Assembly (NCBI GenBank): GCA_002794465.1
Contig: MTSL01000055.1
Span: 1 to 16,392 of the forward strand
Reading direction: 5' to 3'
From: Paramicrosporidium saccamoebae KSL3
Lineage: Eukaryota; Fungi; Cryptomycota
DNA: 16,392 nt
Made by a program: the position numbers and the translations under genes. A model generated the notes under the pieces. The model was not told the DNA's origin and searched no databases. It saw only the letters and a list, made by a program, of their open reading frames with translations. This document shows positions 5,280 to 11,431 of the stretch, piece after piece; position 1 is the stretch's first letter, and each line of letters opens with the position of its first letter.

Positions 5280-6587
5280 CTATAACGCTGTCTTTTGTTC
5301 CTCCTGGGACGAAGATCGCGATCTCGTGGTGGTCTGATTCGATGATGAGACCAGCAATAATCGCTCCAGCACTTGATTCTGTCGCTGCAACTCTTGCAAA
5401 ATGCCCAAAATGACCTCGCCATGTTCGCCAACCGAGGAGGAGGGCGCCTCTTCGGGCAGGAGAGTGGTGCTGAGTCCAACCAGGAAATGCTCCTCTCGGG
5501 CAGGAGGCGAGGCTGAATGGGGGAGGGTGGGCGTGGACAGGATGGGAGCCACTGCCAGAGAGGGACGACGGGGTTGTGAGGAGCGCAGCCAAGCCCAGCT
5601 TTCAGCAAAATTGCGGCCAATCACAATGGAAGGCAAGGCGATTATGAGGAGAGAGAACATCATCAACGGGAGGGTGATGAACTTTCCCAAAACCGTCTTG
5701 GGATGGATGTCGCCGAGACCAACAGTGGTAATGATTTCGGCAACAAACCAGAAGGAGGCGGGGATGCTGGAAAACTGACTGGGCGAGCCATCAATGCCCA
5801 CAAAGTAGCGTTTCTGTGCATCCCACACCCCACGTTCTGCAAAATATAACAATGTGGAAAAGGCCACCATGATAAAAACGAGAAAAACCACCAACGCCAC
5901 CAACGCATCCGTACTCTTCTTGATGGCCAACACTAACGCATCAATGGACAGCTGCAACAACGACGAAAAGGTGTAGCATCGGAACAGTCGTAACAGGCGG
6001 AAGAGACGCAGAACTGTAAAGCGTTGCATATCGGCCCAGGTGTCGCCATACATTCCGAGACTGAGATAGTAGGGAACAATGGCAAACAAATCCGTGATCG
6101 TGTAGAAAGAGATGAAGAAGCGCACAAACTGGGGCCATGTCGTGGAATGTGCATAGCAGCGCACTAGAAACTCGACGGTGAAGATGGAAACGACGGCCGT
6201 CTCAAAGATGAACCACAGACCGGCCTGACTCCTGTAGTATGTCGGCACTGTTTCAATGATGGCGGCTACCGAGCTCACACTGATGGCCAACGCGATGAAG
6301 ATGGCGGCCCAGAAAGCCTACATATATATGAGCAGCAGGACGACTGTACCAGACGAGATGAACTGGGCTCATCCAATAACAGACGTAGTCGCTCTTTCCG
6401 CGAATGGCCATATCCCTACACGTCAAACCCCCTTCCAACGTACCTGTAGAGAAAGACGGTCCAAGTGAGTGGAGGAGGCCGTCTCCAGTCCATTTTCGCT
6501 GTTCATCGCCGGCTTGAACAGTCCCTCACCACTGCCGTTGACTGCCACTGCGAAAACGTCCCCCGCTGTTCTCGTCCCACCCGACAT
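5280..6587 (-). CDS. Six-transmembrane voltage-gated potassium channel (Kv-like, no T1 domain); join(complement 6444..6587, 6350..6415, 5280..6317), 415 aa
   Basis: After two introns: RLRLLLDEPSSSRLAFWAAIFIALAISVSS (pre-S1/S1), FTVEFLVR (S2), TITDLFAIVPYY (S3), VLRLFRLLRLFR (S4), FSSIPASFWFVAEIITTVGLGDIHPKT (pore), IIALPSIVIGRNF (S6), and a C-terminal coiled-coil-like segment. Confidence 0.92.
6318..6349 (-). other. Spliceosomal micro-intron, 32 nt (Kv intron 2)
   Basis: GTACAG...CTCAT...TGTAG; the join restores the Kv pre-S1 motif LLLDEPSSS. Confidence 0.85.
6416..6443 (-). other. Spliceosomal micro-intron, 28 nt (Kv intron 1)
   Basis: GTACGT...TTGAC...TGTAG; in-frame join to an ATG-initiated 48-codon first exon. 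Confidence 0.75.
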
Positions 6588-6597
6588 ACGACCCCGT

Positions 6598-6606
6598 CGA
6601 TTGGTC
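6598..6606 (-). promoter_or_regulatory. CCAAT box upstream of the Kv gene
   Basis: GACCAATCG on the minus strand fits RRCCAATSR in a 40-bp spacer, but lies only about 10 bp from the inferred ATG. Confidence 0.3.
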
Positions 6607-6627
6607 AGTCAACCCATTATAGAATGT

Positions 6628-6933
6628 TTATTCGGGAGCCACGGGGGTCAAATGCACCTTACTCTTGTTGATGACAATGAACTGGGCAGCACCCTCCAGT
6701 ACTGCATAGCCAATAGGACCCTCTTCGCATTCTGAGCAGCAGAGGAACCGCAGATTGGCCATATCAGATACTTCTGTGGTGGGTTTGGAAAAAGCTACGT
6801 TATCAAAGTCAAAGACGTCAGAAACGCTCCAGCCCTCGCTAAACTCGAGTCGTTCCACTGTCGACCATCCGTTAATGGCTCTAAGCTTGTCCGTTCCTAT
6901 CAACCGGCTCCCACACGGACATTGTAACGACAT
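6628..6933 (-). CDS. RABIF: MSS4/RABIF/Dss4 Rab guanine-nucleotide exchange chaperone (Zn-binding), 101 aa
   Basis: CPCGSRLI, W-x-V-x-DVFDFDNVAFSK and FLCCSECEEGPIG match the MSS4 family, including both Zn-binding cysteine pairs. Confidence 0.9.
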   Translation of the reverse strand: MSLQCPCGSRLIGTDKLRAINGWSTVERLEFSEGWSVSDVFDFDNVAFSKPTTEVSDMANLRFLCCSECEEGPIGYAVLEGAAQFIVINKSKVHLTPVAPE

Positions 6934-6975
6934 GGGCGATTATGAGAGTGTATCGTAACCATGAGCCAGGGATAA

Positions 6976-7092
6976 GAGTAAAGAGATGAGGGCAAGAGAG
7001 TGCAATAATGGGAGTGTACTATAGCGAGAGTGTAAGAGTGCGAGAGAGCGAGAGCGATAGTGAGAGTGTAATATAGCGAGCATGTGAGAGCG
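6976..7092. repeat. Degenerate purine-rich tandem repeat, roughly (GYGAGA)n with GAGTGTA-TATAGCGAG duplicated
   Basis: gcgagagtgtaagagtgcgagagagcgagagcgatagtgagagtgtaatatagcgag; bracketed by a 9-bp direct repeat CAGGGATAA at 6967-6975 and 7112-7120. Confidence 0.7.
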
Positions 7093-7213
7093 GATTGTAC
7101 CATCTATTAATCAGGGATAAAGTTTCCTTATTATCAATGCAAGTCTCATAGCCTCGTATGATCAGAAATGCCACAATCTTGATTGTTTACTGGTTTATAT
7201 GTTACAGCGCTGT

Positions 7214-7675
7214 TTACCATCTCCGGGTCTGGCTCACACCCGTTGCCCTTCGTACTTCATTCTAAAGATCACAACACTATCTATCCTAATACCTTGACAC
7301 GCTCTTCTAGCAATGACAGATCGCCAATTAGTTGGTCGACACCCGACTGGAGCGCCTCGACGGGCGTTGTCGTTCGGTCGGTTTGCACCTTGAGCTGGAA
7401 GGCATGTTCCAGAGGATGTGGCACTTTGTATCCTGCAAAAATTACACGGTCCTGGTTTTGGAGCTGGCTACACAAAGGTTATTATGGAATGTGGCAGTAC
7501 CAGGCCAGCACGTTGCCCAAGGTGTGGTCCTCCTTCTGGACGGTAAATGTCGCTGCATTGGGTATCTTTGTGTCTGGTGTCACTGTGACTCTACTACATA
7601 AGACCAATGTGGTCGATAATACTTTTTCACACCCTCAGGGAGCACAAAGAGCTCAAAACGGTCCGGTGCATTCAT
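7214..7675 (-). CDS. RPB11: RNA polymerase II subunit RPB11; join(complement 7623..7675, 7501..7590, 7293..7467, 7214..7261), 121 aa
   Basis: Spliced product [69 protein letters not shown]...LSLLEERVKNEVRRATGVSQTRRW carries the EDHTLGN and [12 protein letters not shown] signatures. Confidence 0.96.
7262..7292 (-). other. Spliceosomal micro-intron, 31 nt (RPB11 intron 3)
   Basis: GTATTA...GTGAT...TTTAG; unspliced reading stops after ERVKVLG. Confidence 0.75.
7468..7500 (-). other. Spliceosomal micro-intron, 33 nt (RPB11 intron 2)
   Basis: GTACTG...ATAAC...TGTAG; contains an in-frame TAA if retained. Confidence 0.92.
7591..7622 (-). other. Spliceosomal micro-intron, 32 nt (RPB11 intron 1), TAGTAG acceptor
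   Basis: GTATTA...CTTAT-GTAGTAG; the distal AG restores the conserved KK-V-T-V. Confidence 0.9.
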
Positions 7676-7698
7676 GACGACACTTGCAAGGGTTGTCT

Positions 7699-7788
7699 CA
7701 ATAATAAAGGATACCATTATAAAGGATTTTACTATAGAGGATTCTACTATAGAGGATTCCATTATAAAGGATTCTATTGTGATGAACA
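7699..7788. repeat. 15-bp tandem repeat, 5 good copies plus one degenerate
   Basis: caataataaaggata / ccattataaaggatt / ttactatagaggatt / ctactatagaggatt / ccattataaaggatt / ctattgtgatgaaca. Confidence 0.9.
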
Positions 7789-7797
7789 TTAGTTCCT

Positions 7798-8730
7798 TTA
7801 TTCTCGGGGCACAGAGAACGATCTAAAAAGAAAGTATCCCGCAACGGCTATCACTAGCAACAACCCAAACAGGACCCAAACAATGATGGGCCTCGTCGCC
7901 ACAAACTGACAATATCCAATGTCCACAATCACAGGCAATCGTCCAGAGCTCTTTGTGTGGTAGACGTAGGCTCCGCATAGACGGTCAGTGAAGCTTGCTG
8001 AGGCCTGGATGCGGTCGAGCACCAAACCCGTCCAGCTCGTGTAGTGGGGAGCCTCCACTACTAATTGGGAAAAGACTCCAACGAGTCGGGTGGCGTCTTC
8101 TGAGCCCAGCAAAACTTCTTTGCTCAACTTACCATCGACTATATTGAGGGTACTGGCGGCGTATTCATTTCCTGAGCTGTTGGGATCGGCGAGGGATACT
8201 CGAGAGAGACTTGCAATCTGCACCTCGCCCTTAGCAATGGAGAGGGAGACCCCAATGGCCTTTACCTCGGCGCCTGGAACAACCACCAAACTGACAGGAA
8301 TTCGGCTTGCCACCAGCATTGTATCATGGTCCTTGCTGAGCACCGTGTTATTTAGTTGCAGCTCAGCCAAAAGTGCGTTTAGCTTCGTTCGTTTTGGATC
8401 TGACAGCGGGGGCAGTCGATGGAGCACCAGCACTGTGGGGTTAATTACCCTCAAGTCGGCCCTTAGTTGGTCTATATTCTCATTCTTATTGTGGGCATCC
8501 AAAAGACCGTTTACATTCCATAATACCACTCGGGTCGCCTCAGTGCACACTGGCGGAATAATCTTGTTCAGATGCAAATTTTGTTGAACCTGCTGGTCAA
8601 ATGCGGTAATAGTGCCGGCTTGCAGCGCATTAGTATAACTTGGCTGGGGCTGTGCATCTCGATCAAGGTCGGCACACTTCCCACCCAAAACGGCCGCTAT
8701 CATAGTCGAGACGAGAAGCTTGACCATCAT
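7798..8730 (-). CDS. Type I membrane protein with a degenerate endonuclease/exonuclease/phosphatase (EEP, DNase I-like) domain; probable pseudoenzyme, 310 aa
   Basis: Hydrophobic N-terminus MMVKLLVSTMIAAVLG; EEP-like motifs in the right order (RVVLWNVNG, INPTVLVLHR, VLLGSED, YTSWTGLVLDRI, SSGRLPVIVDI); C-terminal TM IIVWVLFGLLLVIAVAGYFLF followed by an 8-aa tail. Confidence 0.75.
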   Translation of the reverse strand: MMVKLLVSTMIAAVLGGKCADLDRDAQPQPSYTNALQAGTITAFDQQVQQNLHLNKIIPPVCTEATRVVLWNVNGLLDAHNKNENIDQLRADLRVINPTVLVLHRLPPLSDPKRTKLNALLAELQLNNTVLSKDHDTMLVASRIPVSLVVVPGAEVKAIGVSLSIAKGEVQIASLSRVSLADPNSSGNEYAASTLNIVDGKLSKEVLLGSEDATRLVGVFSQLVVEAPHYTSWTGLVLDRIQASASFTDRLCGAYVYHTKSSGRLPVIVDIGYCQFVATRPIIVWVLFGLLLVIAVAGYFLFRSFSVPRE

Positions 8731-8942: not shown

Positions 8943-10976
8943 ATGGAATCATCTTCGCCTCCCAAGGATACCTTTACCGAGACATCCAACCGTACTGGAC
9001 GCTTCTCCAAAACCAACCGGTACCATTTCTAGCATTTTTCATGCTGTAGACGCCAATTCCACGAATCGTCTAATGAGACATCCCATCGTCCAACTCCTTC
9101 GGGCTACGAACACCCTGTCAAAAGCAACATTCTAGCACGTTTCCGTCCCGACCTAAAGCTGCCCGCCTCCTTCTCGGGAATGTCCGAGTTTACTGAGATT
9201 TGGATGGACGAGCTCCTCCTGCCCGTCAGTCGTGAACCCTTCTCCCCCGAAGAGGAGACGATTTTTAGCTCAGGACAGTTGGCAAGCAACTCTAAGAAAC
9301 AGCACGGCCCCACTCGAGGCGGAGCACGGGGCGGCCATCGCGGAAGAGGCGGTCGTCAAACCGGAACGGACCGAGAAATGGCACATTCCTTTGAAGGGTC
9401 CTCCTCCTTTAGCAATCGGATGAAAGACTTTCCGGCTCCAGATAGAAATGACAACAGCATGGTGGAGGAGGATGCTCTATGGAATATGCCGCAAACAGAA
9501 GATTCGCTGGGTACTTTTGATGACAAGGGCAACTTTTCAGTGGGTGGCGTATTTGGGGGAAGAACGTTGGAGGAGGGACTATTGAGTTCCTCTGCCCCAG
9601 GCCATGATCGTCTCCCTCCCCCAGGAAGGATGGCGGAGGGGAAGGATGATGCACTAATGGGTTTCATGACGCAACTGAAGGAAAAGAAGGAGGAGGCTTT
9701 GGTAGGTCCCACGACACAATGGTACTATCGCGATCCCGCTGGTCAGATCCAGGGACCCTTCCAGACCAAAAAGATGCTCCATTGGTACACTCGTAATTAT
9801 TTCCCCGAAAGTCTTCCCCTGCGTCGAGAATGTGACATTTTGTTTGAGCCGCTGAGTGTGTGGAAGAGTAAATGTGGTGGAGTTTGTCCGTTCGAGTTGG
9901 AGGTGGAATCTCCATCTTCCTCTTCTCGTTCCTCCACCATTGCTTCATCCCGTTCCTCAGTCTCCTCCTCTTTGCCTGCCCCCATATCACCACCAGCACC
10001 GACGGCAAGTATTTTTGCCAAGTTGGGATTGCCTTGGACAGGTCCCACCAAACCAGAACCGGAAGTACTGCCGACAACCAAAGAGCCGAATCTTGCTGAG
10101 GATCAGCTCATGTTTTTGAAGCAATTTAACATAAAACCTACAGCCGAGCCTGTGTCTACGTCTACTGGATCGGTCTTGTCGGATCGTTCTGTTGAACGGA
10201 GGACATTGAACATGGGAGAAAAGTCACTGAGTGCAAACGAGAGATTACCGAACCCAGCTGGACGATCATTGAATGTGGGGGCATCGGAGATTGGATGGAA
10301 AAAGCTGGAGGTTAGTCCGGTGGCTGCGTTTGAAATTGCTCCACCCCCTACTGTATCCAAGCCATCATCAATGGCACCGGCACCAAAGCCACTGGTTTCT
10401 CCCTTGGAATTGATACCGGCCAACAGTCCCACTGTCGGTTGGACCCGTCCCGTCTCCAATTCGCGCCCTCTAAGTGATATCATGCGAGAGGAGGCAGAGA
10501 TGGATGCGGCTCGACGGGCTTCACAGCCGAAAAATGCGCCAAAGTCGTTTGCAGAGACACTACGTGCTGCTGAGGCGAGCCGTCTCCCCACCAAGCCAAT
10601 GATACCACCCACTGTTTCAGCTTCCGCATCAAAGCCATCCATGGTCAAGAAGGCTACTAATACGCCGACTTTAACATCTTCCAACCCGACAAACAATGCC
10701 AAGCAGACAGACACCAAAAACTGGTGTTTGGCCCAACTGAAGCCGCTGGAAAGTTCGTATGACACTAACATGTGCACAATCCTGCTGATGGAACTGCAGA
10801 CGCCCCTTGAAATTGCTGGCTTCATTGAGGACAACATGAAGAGCACGCGGATGGACATGCGGACGTTTATGAGAGAACTGGTGGAGCGTCGTTTTGGTGC
10901 TCCCGCACCGGTAGAGACGCCAACAGAAGATGCCGAATTCAAAACTGTGGGACGCAAACAACATCGTAAGAAGTAA
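8943..10976 (+). CDS. GIGYF/Smy2-like GYF-domain protein; join(8943..9019,9050..10976), 667 aa
   Basis: GYF domain WYYRDPAGQIQGPF...MLHWYTRNYFPESLPLRR; GIGYF-like N-terminus (ILARF...LPVSREPFSPEEE followed by an RGG stretch); PLSDIMREE; C-terminal WC...L...P-x-EI...F helical domain. A 30-nt intron extends the track ORF upstream. Confidence 0.88.
9020..9049 (+). other. Spliceosomal micro-intron, 30 nt (GYF gene)
   Basis: GTACCA...TTCAT...TGTAG; contains an in-frame TAG if retained; joins ATG 8943 to the main frame. Confidence 0.75.
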
Positions 10977-11037
10977 TCCGATAAATACAGACAGCATCAT
11001 TGCGGGATCCGATATATAAAGCGGATTAGATGGATCC

Positions 11038-11145
11038 GTTTGTAGTTATGAGCTTGAAGTTGTGATTAATTTATAACTGGGCTTGGCTTGTAGTTGTGAT
11101 TAGTTTATAACTAGGATTAGTCTATAGTTGTGCTTAATTTAGCAC
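11038..11145. repeat. Degenerate 34-bp tandem repeat, about 3 copies
   Basis: AGTTGTG recurs at 11058, 11092 and 11126; the first two units share agttgtgatta(a/g)tttataact. Confidence 0.8.
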
Positions 11146-11431
11146 GTCATACTATGATGTAAGGATCATCCTGCCTACGTACAGAGACTACTATCATGCA
11201 CACTTAACGAGGGTTGTTTTTGTGGGGTATAATACGTCTTTTCTAGGGCGCATTTATGGGGTGGATTCTTTCATCTGACATTCCTTAGACGCGAGCCGGT
11301 CCACCACGCATCACATTTATCCTGTCCACGCAACAAACGATCAAGTCTTGATTACATAACAACAGGACCAATACGACATTATAGCCGCACAGACCTTAAT
11401 ACCTAATTCGGATAGACCGACCAGGGTGAGG

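Follow-up and report, generated by a model that had tools for sequence, protein, structure and literature searches.

The gene at positions 7,798 to 8,730 of contig MTSL01000055.1 of Paramicrosporidium saccamoebae KSL3, a rozellid and intranuclear parasite of amoebae, probably encodes a type-I membrane protein whose catalytically degenerate EEP (endonuclease/exonuclease/phosphatase, DNase I-like) ectodomain acts as a non-catalytic binding or regulatory module. The window, that is, the whole stretch of DNA that was analysed, comprises the complete contig of 16,392 nucleotides from assembly GCA_002794465.1, and the 310-aa product of the gene is called the window protein here. By its sequence, this protein is a member of a previously unnamed family, composed of a signal peptide, an N-terminal extension of ~45 aa, an EEP core and a C-terminal transmembrane (TM) helix. 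A literature search found no publication on this signal peptide/TM (SP/TM) EEP family, and the P. saccamoebae genome paper is silent on it. What is new here is an unannotated EEP pseudoenzyme variant; EEP pseudoenzymes as such are already known.

Direct searches gave no indication of the EEP fold. Pfam scans of the window protein and of its 5-sequence orthologue set yielded zero EEP matches, and nothing meaningful was returned from PDB sequences by phmmer with the protein or by hmmsearch with alignment A1. We built a 5-sequence profile from the window protein and its four degenerate orthologues and ran it in an exhaustive search of 1.84 billion representative proteins. There were 160 matches at E<=1e-3, of which 50 reached E<=1e-10, and canonical EEPs were among them (P0014 at 3e-32 and P0016 at 6e-30). 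PF03372 was found in 52 of the best 80 of these 160 matches (best 8.2e-32) and PF14529 in 18, and the consensus of the profile matches reads TYNVH, LQEV, GNxIASK, THLE, GDFN, YTCWxGxxIDFI and GxYVYxTxxSDHLPxIxD. Moreover, PSACC_01522 (P0166, 328 aa), which is encoded in the same genome and reaches 57.3 bits on PF03372 (cut-off 24.5), aligned with the window protein in BLASTP at 8e-28, with 26% identity over 283 residues. An hhalign comparison of two profiles, one from the 10 closest degenerate relatives and one from 13 intact ones, gave a probability of 100% and an E value of 2e-49 over 276 columns.

Structure prediction led to the same assignment. AlphaFold2 with a 44-sequence alignment produced a model with a pLDDT of 91.0 and a pTM of 0.87, and all 44 matches of this model to the PDB at E<=1e-3 in Foldseek were EEP structures, the fold being a four-layer alpha/beta sandwich, nearly all with probability 1.00. 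These included 4ruw (7.8e-7), TDP2 (5ino, 1.6e-6) and the LINE-1 endonuclease (EN; 1vyb, 3.7e-6, TM-score 0.56 by target length), and further APE1, DNase1L3, neutral sphingomyelinase (nSMase) and Crc. A low-confidence model from the shallow 5-sequence alignment likewise gave EEP matches only. When the 44-sequence profile was used in a word-indexed homologue search, hardly any sequences beyond the input came back, and cluster look-ups for 30 relatives gave two entries named 'hypothetical protein', one generic JGI EEP-hydrolase label and one Dependentiae ankyrin protein, the others being nameless. Because the profile search, the same-genome paralogue, the profile–profile comparison and the structure model agree, we regard the predicted EEP fold and homology of the window protein as firm. 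The EEP fold had been proposed in an initial annotation made from the letters of the sequence, and the AlphaFold, Foldseek and hhalign checks all point to it.

The catalytic set of the fold is largely lost from the window protein (Table 1). When 158 family members were aligned to one hidden Markov model, the catalytic octet N-E-H-D-N-D-D-H was complete in most of them, and the window protein read N-R-S-K-gap-D-G-R, with two of eight positions (N72 and D239) kept and six lost. This agrees with the loss of the catalytic set described in the initial annotation, in which the open reading frame (ORF) and all named residues (L103-H104-R105, G209-S210-E211-D212, S262-G263-R264, W71-N72, D239, C62 and C274) were also placed correctly. 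The replacements of Glu by R105 and of Asp-His by G263-R264 named there are supported by our alignments, and the replacement of the THLE His by S176 had been overlooked. The equivalent His of Bacillus cereus sphingomyelinase C aligns with GTHLE of PSACC_01522. Among the substituted positions, G263 alone is invariant in the closest clade.

A different position must be given to the GDxN motif, which had been read as GSED. The strand that carries it corresponds to STLNIVD (~193–199) according to hhalign, hmmalign, MAFFT alignment A3 and BLASTP, and since the 6-residue gap in the hhalign alignment falls exactly over GDMNAH of PSACC_01522, the loop has been deleted. GSED (209–212) lies at the end of the helix following this strand and was ruled out as the counterpart of GDxN; the mapping was reproduced by one 80-sequence MAFFT alignment containing long multidomain proteins. 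It had also been suggested that two arginines in former catalytic positions preserve phosphate binding. That suggestion does not hold, since position 105 varies among orthologues (R, Q, M or D); position 264 is R or H.

According to these alignments, canonical Mg2+-dependent EEP hydrolysis should be firmly excluded for the window protein. An enzyme with a non-canonical active site, formed for example by R105, R264, D199 or E211, would be consistent with the persistence of N72 and D239 and with charged residues near the old site. However, only two of eight positions survive, the metal-binding Glu and the Asp-His pair being among those lost, a deletion has removed the GDxN loop, and the candidate replacement residues are not conserved in orthologues, so that residual catalysis of this kind is improbable.

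Loss of the active site does not correspond to decay of the gene. The dN/dS ratio of the window gene to P0002, an orthologue with 77% identity, is 0.153 (0.12 in the EEP core), and the ratio for P0004 against P0005 is 0.14. The order of a GYF-domain gene, the EEP-like gene and RPB11 is colinear in two further contigs (L001 and L002), in which orthologue identity is 35–37% and the RPB11 segments are ~64–96% identical. With dN/dS of ~0.15 and this conserved gene order, the gene is evidently functional, under purifying selection and vertically inherited. A decaying pseudogene was ruled out by the dN/dS of 0.15, and the earlier proposal of a repurposed pseudoenzyme instead of a decaying gene is upheld by the purifying selection.

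The synteny and the orthologues also bear on the gene model, for which the public annotation differs from ours. NCBI annotates the locus (window 6300–8730, reverse strand) as a 519-aa 'Mss4-like domain-containing protein', which joins aa 1–273 of the ORF, the first exon of RPB11 (MNAPDRFELF...) and an Mss4 domain at aa 449–509, and in which the TM segment of the ORF is spliced out. In alignments to ORF 7798–8730, orthologues of 313–336 aa have equivalent start and stop positions, and all four orthologues on other contigs (77–35% identity) finish with a TM helix and a stop codon. Given these orthologue ends and an independent, syntenic RPB11 gene, the correct gene is the 310-aa ORF, which has no intron, and in the NCBI model three genes have been fused into one chimera. 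That the ORF is instead the first exon of a 519-aa Mss4-like protein is hardly credible. The deposited annotation exists, and the Mss4 domain at its aa 449–509 is genuine, but its splicing removes a conserved TM helix and tail, it runs through an RPB11 exon (PF13656), four orthologues elsewhere stop after the TM helix exactly as the plain ORF does, and RPB11 is separate and syntenic in L001 and L002. No Mss4 domain (PF04421) was matched in a Pfam scan of the 310-aa product; Mss4 is a separate downstream locus.

The protein has a predicted type-I single-pass layout, in which the TM helix is clear and the putative signal peptide rests on hydropathy and family conservation. A hydrophobic leader followed by a conserved Cys is found family-wide in the alignment, and the relatives nearest to the window protein, intact or degenerate, all combine this leader and Cys with PQxQPxxY, NxxIPxxC, an EEP core, a C-terminal TM helix and a short tail. 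In the N-terminal extension (aa 18–62), N55, I58 and P59, together with R67 just beyond it, are invariant or nearly so in 44 family members, intact and degenerate alike. Pfam scans matched no model over this extension; its pLDDT is mostly 84–97 (74 at residues 11–20), and AlphaFold2 predicts helices at 41–50 and 52–57. The C-terminal TM helix (I282–F302) and the 8-aa tail described in the initial annotation were recovered from hydropathy and sequence. The TM segment is kept in orthologues and in most SP/TM family members, and F302 and P308 are invariant in the 5 closest orthologues. A glycosylphosphatidylinositol anchor was judged less likely than a TM helix, in view of the conserved charged tail that follows the hydrophobic stretch.

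Four cysteines of the window protein (C19, C62, C252 and C274) are conserved. C19 and C62 co-occur in intact and degenerate members, and the C252/C274 pair is confined to the window protein's own degenerate clade. In the AlphaFold2 model, C252 lies in strand 251–256 and C274 just past strand 267–272, on the other arm of the same hairpin. Co-occurrence and hairpin placement make C19–C62 and C252–C274 the likely disulfides, and the previously suggested C62–C274 bond, which took two cysteines of the four into account, is disfavoured. Sequons at N127 (NNT) and N184 (NSS) are present as had been noted, but they are not conserved, N184 being lost in the 77% orthologue and N127 being kept only there. 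The ectodomain is mildly acidic, with a pI of 6.07 and a net charge of -3 (K+R-D-E), and pI values of 5.4–6.8 are found in 9 of 10 members of the four-cysteine (4-Cys) clade. Such acidity would argue weakly against non-specific nucleic-acid binding.

Paralogues place the window gene beside an intact enzyme gene. The paralogue count, which had been proposed as a check, gives at least three copies in the P. saccamoebae genome, one intact (PSACC_01522) and two degenerate (the window gene and a neighbour of PSACC_01522). PSACC_01522 and this neighbour form a tandem pair on contig MTSL01000107.1 (L009, 4001–6191). The neighbour lies 190 bp downstream of PSACC_01522 and is a degenerate protein of 337 aa that has both a signal peptide and a TM helix and gives zero Pfam matches. 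This 337-aa paralogue has LRN for LQE, TAL for THL, GNFP for GDMN and STN for SDH. As annotated, PSACC_01522 ends in a short aromatic hydrophobic tail (ILEYFYFPFPWW), without a full TM helix. A second tandem pair lies on an unrelated contig (L010, 872–2780; Logan SRR26912484) and consists of intact P0019 and degenerate P0022, which has SGR for SDH.

Phylogenetic relations were estimated by neighbour-joining of 62 members, with limited viral sampling. The 4-Cys clade, which holds the window gene, has 97% bootstrap and is nested in the SP/TM family (86%), and giant-virus and Dependentiae sequences fall outside the latter. All members of the 4-Cys clade have Gly in place of Asp at position 263, and the clade retains neither the metal-binding Glu nor the GDxN loop. 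The tree gives no support for a single clade of all degenerate members (21% bootstrap), and P0019 and P0022 group together (79%); on this account, loss of the catalytic site appears to have happened more than once, including after tandem duplication. P. saccamoebae is the sole named eukaryote among the matches with the SP/TM form, the others being from metagenomic contigs, and an absence of the family from other fungi is suggested.

Further members of the family were observed in other contexts. P0041, from a second degenerate clade, is encoded at 10001–11161 of a gene-dense 50.9-kb eukaryotic contig (L005; ENA ERZ27237304), keeps the His, has Thr for the Asp of SDH and ends in the tail KIHDDI. 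Its neighbours are an SNF2/bromodomain ATPase, a Suf/HAT-repeat protein, a family-22 glycosyltransferase and SGT1; Pfam scans of the unannotated neighbour proteins in L005, L009 and L010 were empty. P0009 and P0026 are proteins of 732–1108 aa with two or three stretches matching the family profile, the longest contig for both being 9,585 bp, and they may be tandem arrays or fused gene calls.

Coexistence of intact and degenerate copies in one genome, together with tandem pairs in two unrelated contigs, is also what would be expected of the main rival to our interpretation, in which the window protein, itself non-catalytic, serves PSACC_01522 as a dedicated subunit or regulator inside the secretory pathway and is not an autonomous surface binder. 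Moreover, the N-terminal extension and the C19/C62 pair are common to both proteins, and the pocket is poorly conserved relative to other, well-conserved surfaces (TSWTG and RLCGAY). However, the window gene is unlinked to PSACC_01522, being located on a different contig, and PSACC_01522 as annotated is without a full TM helix. We consider this possibility unlikely, although worth keeping in mind.

The initial annotation had noted a likeness to EEP proteins of amoeba-infecting giant viruses and had proposed a possible horizontal acquisition. The likeness is supported in part: the best fold matches in BFVD are giant-virus EEPs (Marseillevirus LCMAC102, 2.9e-12; Klosneuvirus, 4.8e-11; Terrestrivirus, 2.7e-10), and two IMG/VR contigs (L007 and L008), one of them a giant-virus metagenome-assembled genome, encode intact distant relatives. 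However, the YVYxTxxSDHLPxIxD pattern is a pattern of the whole family, and the viruses lie outside the SP/TM clade. A nested position of the window protein in a viral clade was not found in the neighbour-joining tree with its limited viral sampling, where L007 and L008 are outside the SP/TM clade (86%).

A viral relative of 697 aa is encoded at L007 3740–5833 (IMG/VR UViG_3300035698_002290); its EEP domain is intact and is followed by a P/S repeat linker of the PSKPSN type and an unannotated C-terminal domain. P0070 (MCX5925631.1), a distant relative, is a 986-aa ankyrin-repeat–EEP fusion of Candidatus Dependentiae bacterium, from an amoeba-associated lineage.

Acquisition from an amoeba-infecting giant virus or an amoeba symbiont would be in line with the viral top fold matches (2.9e-12), with the relatives in giant-virus contigs and with the ankyrin–EEP fusion in Dependentiae. 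It is nevertheless very improbable, as viral and Dependentiae sequences fall outside the SP/TM clade of the window protein and its two same-genome paralogues (86%), synteny is kept across deeply diverged orthologues, and base composition is ordinary. GC (0.511) and GC3 (0.556) of the window gene match those of neighbouring housekeeping genes. Recent horizontal transfer was ruled out by synteny at 35–37% identity, by composition and by the presence of the closest intact relative in the same genome. The gene is an old conserved duplicate of an intact same-genome enzyme gene and not a viral import; these data leave room for a transfer of the entire family in the distant past, whatever its direction.

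In our preferred interpretation of the window protein as a non-catalytic binding or regulatory module, the signal peptide would be cleaved and the ectodomain would fold with the two disulfides C19–C62 and C252–C274. It would then face the lumen or the exterior, on a membrane of the secretory pathway or of the surface, and would be incapable of the Mg2+-dependent phosphodiester hydrolysis typical of the fold. The module may hold the ligand class cleaved by the intact paralogue, or may bind a protein partner. With regard to the ligand, we lean weakly to a lipid or glycan phosphodiester head-group over nucleic acid, because the ectodomain is acidic and because, among PDB sequences, B. cereus sphingomyelinase C ranks first both for the family profile (1.5e-9) and for PSACC_01522 (2.4e-5). 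In the profile search it is closely followed by Nocturnin, 4ruw and TDP2.

Several points weigh against this interpretation or against its lipid component. The sphingomyelinase C alignments span only ~80–90 residues, intact members give weak, sub-threshold matches to the ExoIII-type NCBIfam model TIGR00633, and Foldseek places TDP2, LINE-1 EN and APE1 as high as nSMase. The pocket residues N72, 105, 176 and D239 vary among orthologues, which makes a conserved phosphate-binding pocket unlikely; since the old active-site pocket is poorly conserved, binding may occur via another surface. Because annotated PSACC_01522 is without a full TM helix, the paralogues may act in different compartments. 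Moreover, the location, the disulfides and the ligand are all things that we infer. A more specific proposal goes further: the 4-Cys clade could be a surface receptor or adhesin of Paramicrosporidium-like endoparasites in which a phosphodiesterase fold has been exapted to bind, but not cut, a host molecule such as a membrane lipid head-group or a nuclear component, and the intact and degenerate paralogues could form an old enzyme/pseudoenzyme module of the host-parasite interface, recurring in uncultured rozellid lineages. At present this is speculative and rather doubtful.

Table 1. Features of the window gene, its product and the flanking genes (positions in the window)
Feature	Position	Strand	Remarks
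Complete intron-less coding sequence, 310 aa + stop	7798..8730	-	Stop codon 7798-7800; from the ORF list
Putative cleavable signal peptide, aa 1-17 (MMVKLLVSTMIAAVLGG)	8680..8730	-	Predicted from hydropathy (10-aa Kyte-Doolittle maximum 2.5) and family conservation
Family-specific N-terminal extension, aa 18-62, C19 to C62	8545..8679	-	Motifs Q27-x-x-P30-x-Y32 and N55-K-x-I58-P59-x-x-C62
Degenerate EEP (DNase I-like) core, aa 63-273	7912..8544	-	AlphaFold2 model, Foldseek, hhalign
N72, retained first-strand metal-site Asn	8515..8517	-	Aligns with N of TYNVH/TYNIH; N in 8/10 4-Cys-clade members
R105, replaces metal-binding Glu of LQE/FQEV	8416..8418	-	R, Q, M or D among orthologues
S176, replaces His of GTHLE	8203..8205	-	hmmalign and hhalign; position 176 is S, R or W in closest clade
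D199-G200, junction lacking the GDxN loop (GDMNAH in PSACC_01522)	8131..8136	-	6-residue gap in hhalign; hmmalign and MAFFT A3 put the motif at 196-202
D239, retained Asp of (I/L)D(F/R)I strand	8014..8016	-	Nearly invariant across family
G263-R264, replace Asp-His of SDH	7939..7944	-	G263 invariant in all 4-Cys-clade members; position 264 R or H
Juxtamembrane segment, aa 274-281, begins with C274	7888..7911	-	C274 clade-specific, co-occurs with C252 (7975-7977)
Single TM helix I282-F302	7825..7887	-	Kyte-Doolittle up to 2.7; AlphaFold2 helix 282-305
8-aa cytoplasmic tail RSFSVPRE	7801..7824	-	Read from sequence
RPB11 (RNA polymerase II subunit), separate downstream gene with >=1 intron, misfused by NCBI	7281..7675	-	Pfam PF13656, 1.8e-15; colinear in L001 and L002
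GYF-domain gene, divergently transcribed, conserved upstream neighbour	9180..10976	+	Pfam PF02213, 5.9e-17; colinear in L001 and L002

The neighbouring genes in the window encode a cyclin, a photolyase, a WD40 protein, PDH-E1 beta, an ion channel, Mss4, RPB11, the GYF-domain protein and a transketolase. In the ~120-bp spacer between the stop codon of the EEP-like gene and the start of RPB11, a 15-bp tandem repeat (ATAAAGGATTCCACT, 4.7 copies, 83% matches) occupies 7704–7774, and this repeat may serve in termination or as part of a promoter. A GA-rich tandem repeat at 7021–7092, located between Mss4 and RPB11, consists of two copies of a 36-bp unit with nested 6–8-bp units, and it appears as low-complexity protein sequence in the fused NCBI model.

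Our results define an unrecognised family of eukaryotic membrane-anchored EEP proteins, and they correct a public 'Mss4-like' protein that is a chimera of three genes. Automated annotation misses the degenerate members because none of them gives a Pfam match. Matched intact and degenerate proteins, with repeated loss that includes tandem duplicates, offer a set for studying the change from EEP enzyme to pseudoenzyme. In addition, P. saccamoebae, as an intranuclear parasite, does without the usual nucleotide transporters (PMC5701793). EEP proteins outside the cytoplasm could plausibly contribute to the way in which it exploits its host.

The closest known system is the family itself. PSACC_01522 and the metagenomic SP/TM relatives share with the window protein the signal peptide, the C...PQxQPxSY...NxxIPxVC extension and the EEP core, and PSACC_01522 and the window protein have the motifs YT(S/C)WxG, GAYVY and LPVxVD in common. 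However, PSACC_01522 keeps 8/8 catalytic positions and passes the Pfam threshold, whereas the window protein keeps 2/8, gives no Pfam match, is without the GDMN loop and has the extra C252/C274 pair. Giant-virus EEPs (LCMAC102 A0A481YV85 and Klosneuvirus A0A1V0SL41) share the family-wide motifs TxNVH, LQEV, GTHLD, GDFN and YYTxxSDH(L/F)PL, but they keep the catalytic residues, do not show the four-cysteine pattern and fall outside the SP/TM clade of cellular proteins.

Among characterized EEP proteins, sphingomyelinase C acts at the membrane surface. B. cereus SMase (2ddr) and human nSMase (8j2f) have the EEP fold in common with the window protein, and the match of the family profile and of PSACC_01522 covers GTHLE...GGDMN...P-YT. 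A whole-domain relationship to sphingomyelinase C was not found: the alignment is partial, and the window protein has none of the catalytic residues Glu, His, Asp/Asn and Asp-His. Eukaryotic nSMases also have an architecture unlike the signal peptide and single C-terminal TM helix of the window protein. TDP2, APE1/ExoIII and LINE-1 EN are top Foldseek matches (5ino, 1.6e-6; 1vyb, 3.7e-6; 6bov, 7e-6), and the YTxW...(I/L)D pattern of the family is of the ExoIII/APE type. However, TDP2, APE1 and LINE-1 EN are soluble nuclear nucleases with a full catalytic set, whereas the window protein is predicted to be membrane-anchored, extracytoplasmic and degenerate. A precedent for a non-catalytic EEP fold is Crc of Pseudomonas (4jg3; Foldseek 1.7e-4), a cytoplasmic bacterial RNA-binding co-regulator. 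Crc shares only the fold with the window protein, which appears to be a eukaryotic type-I membrane protein.

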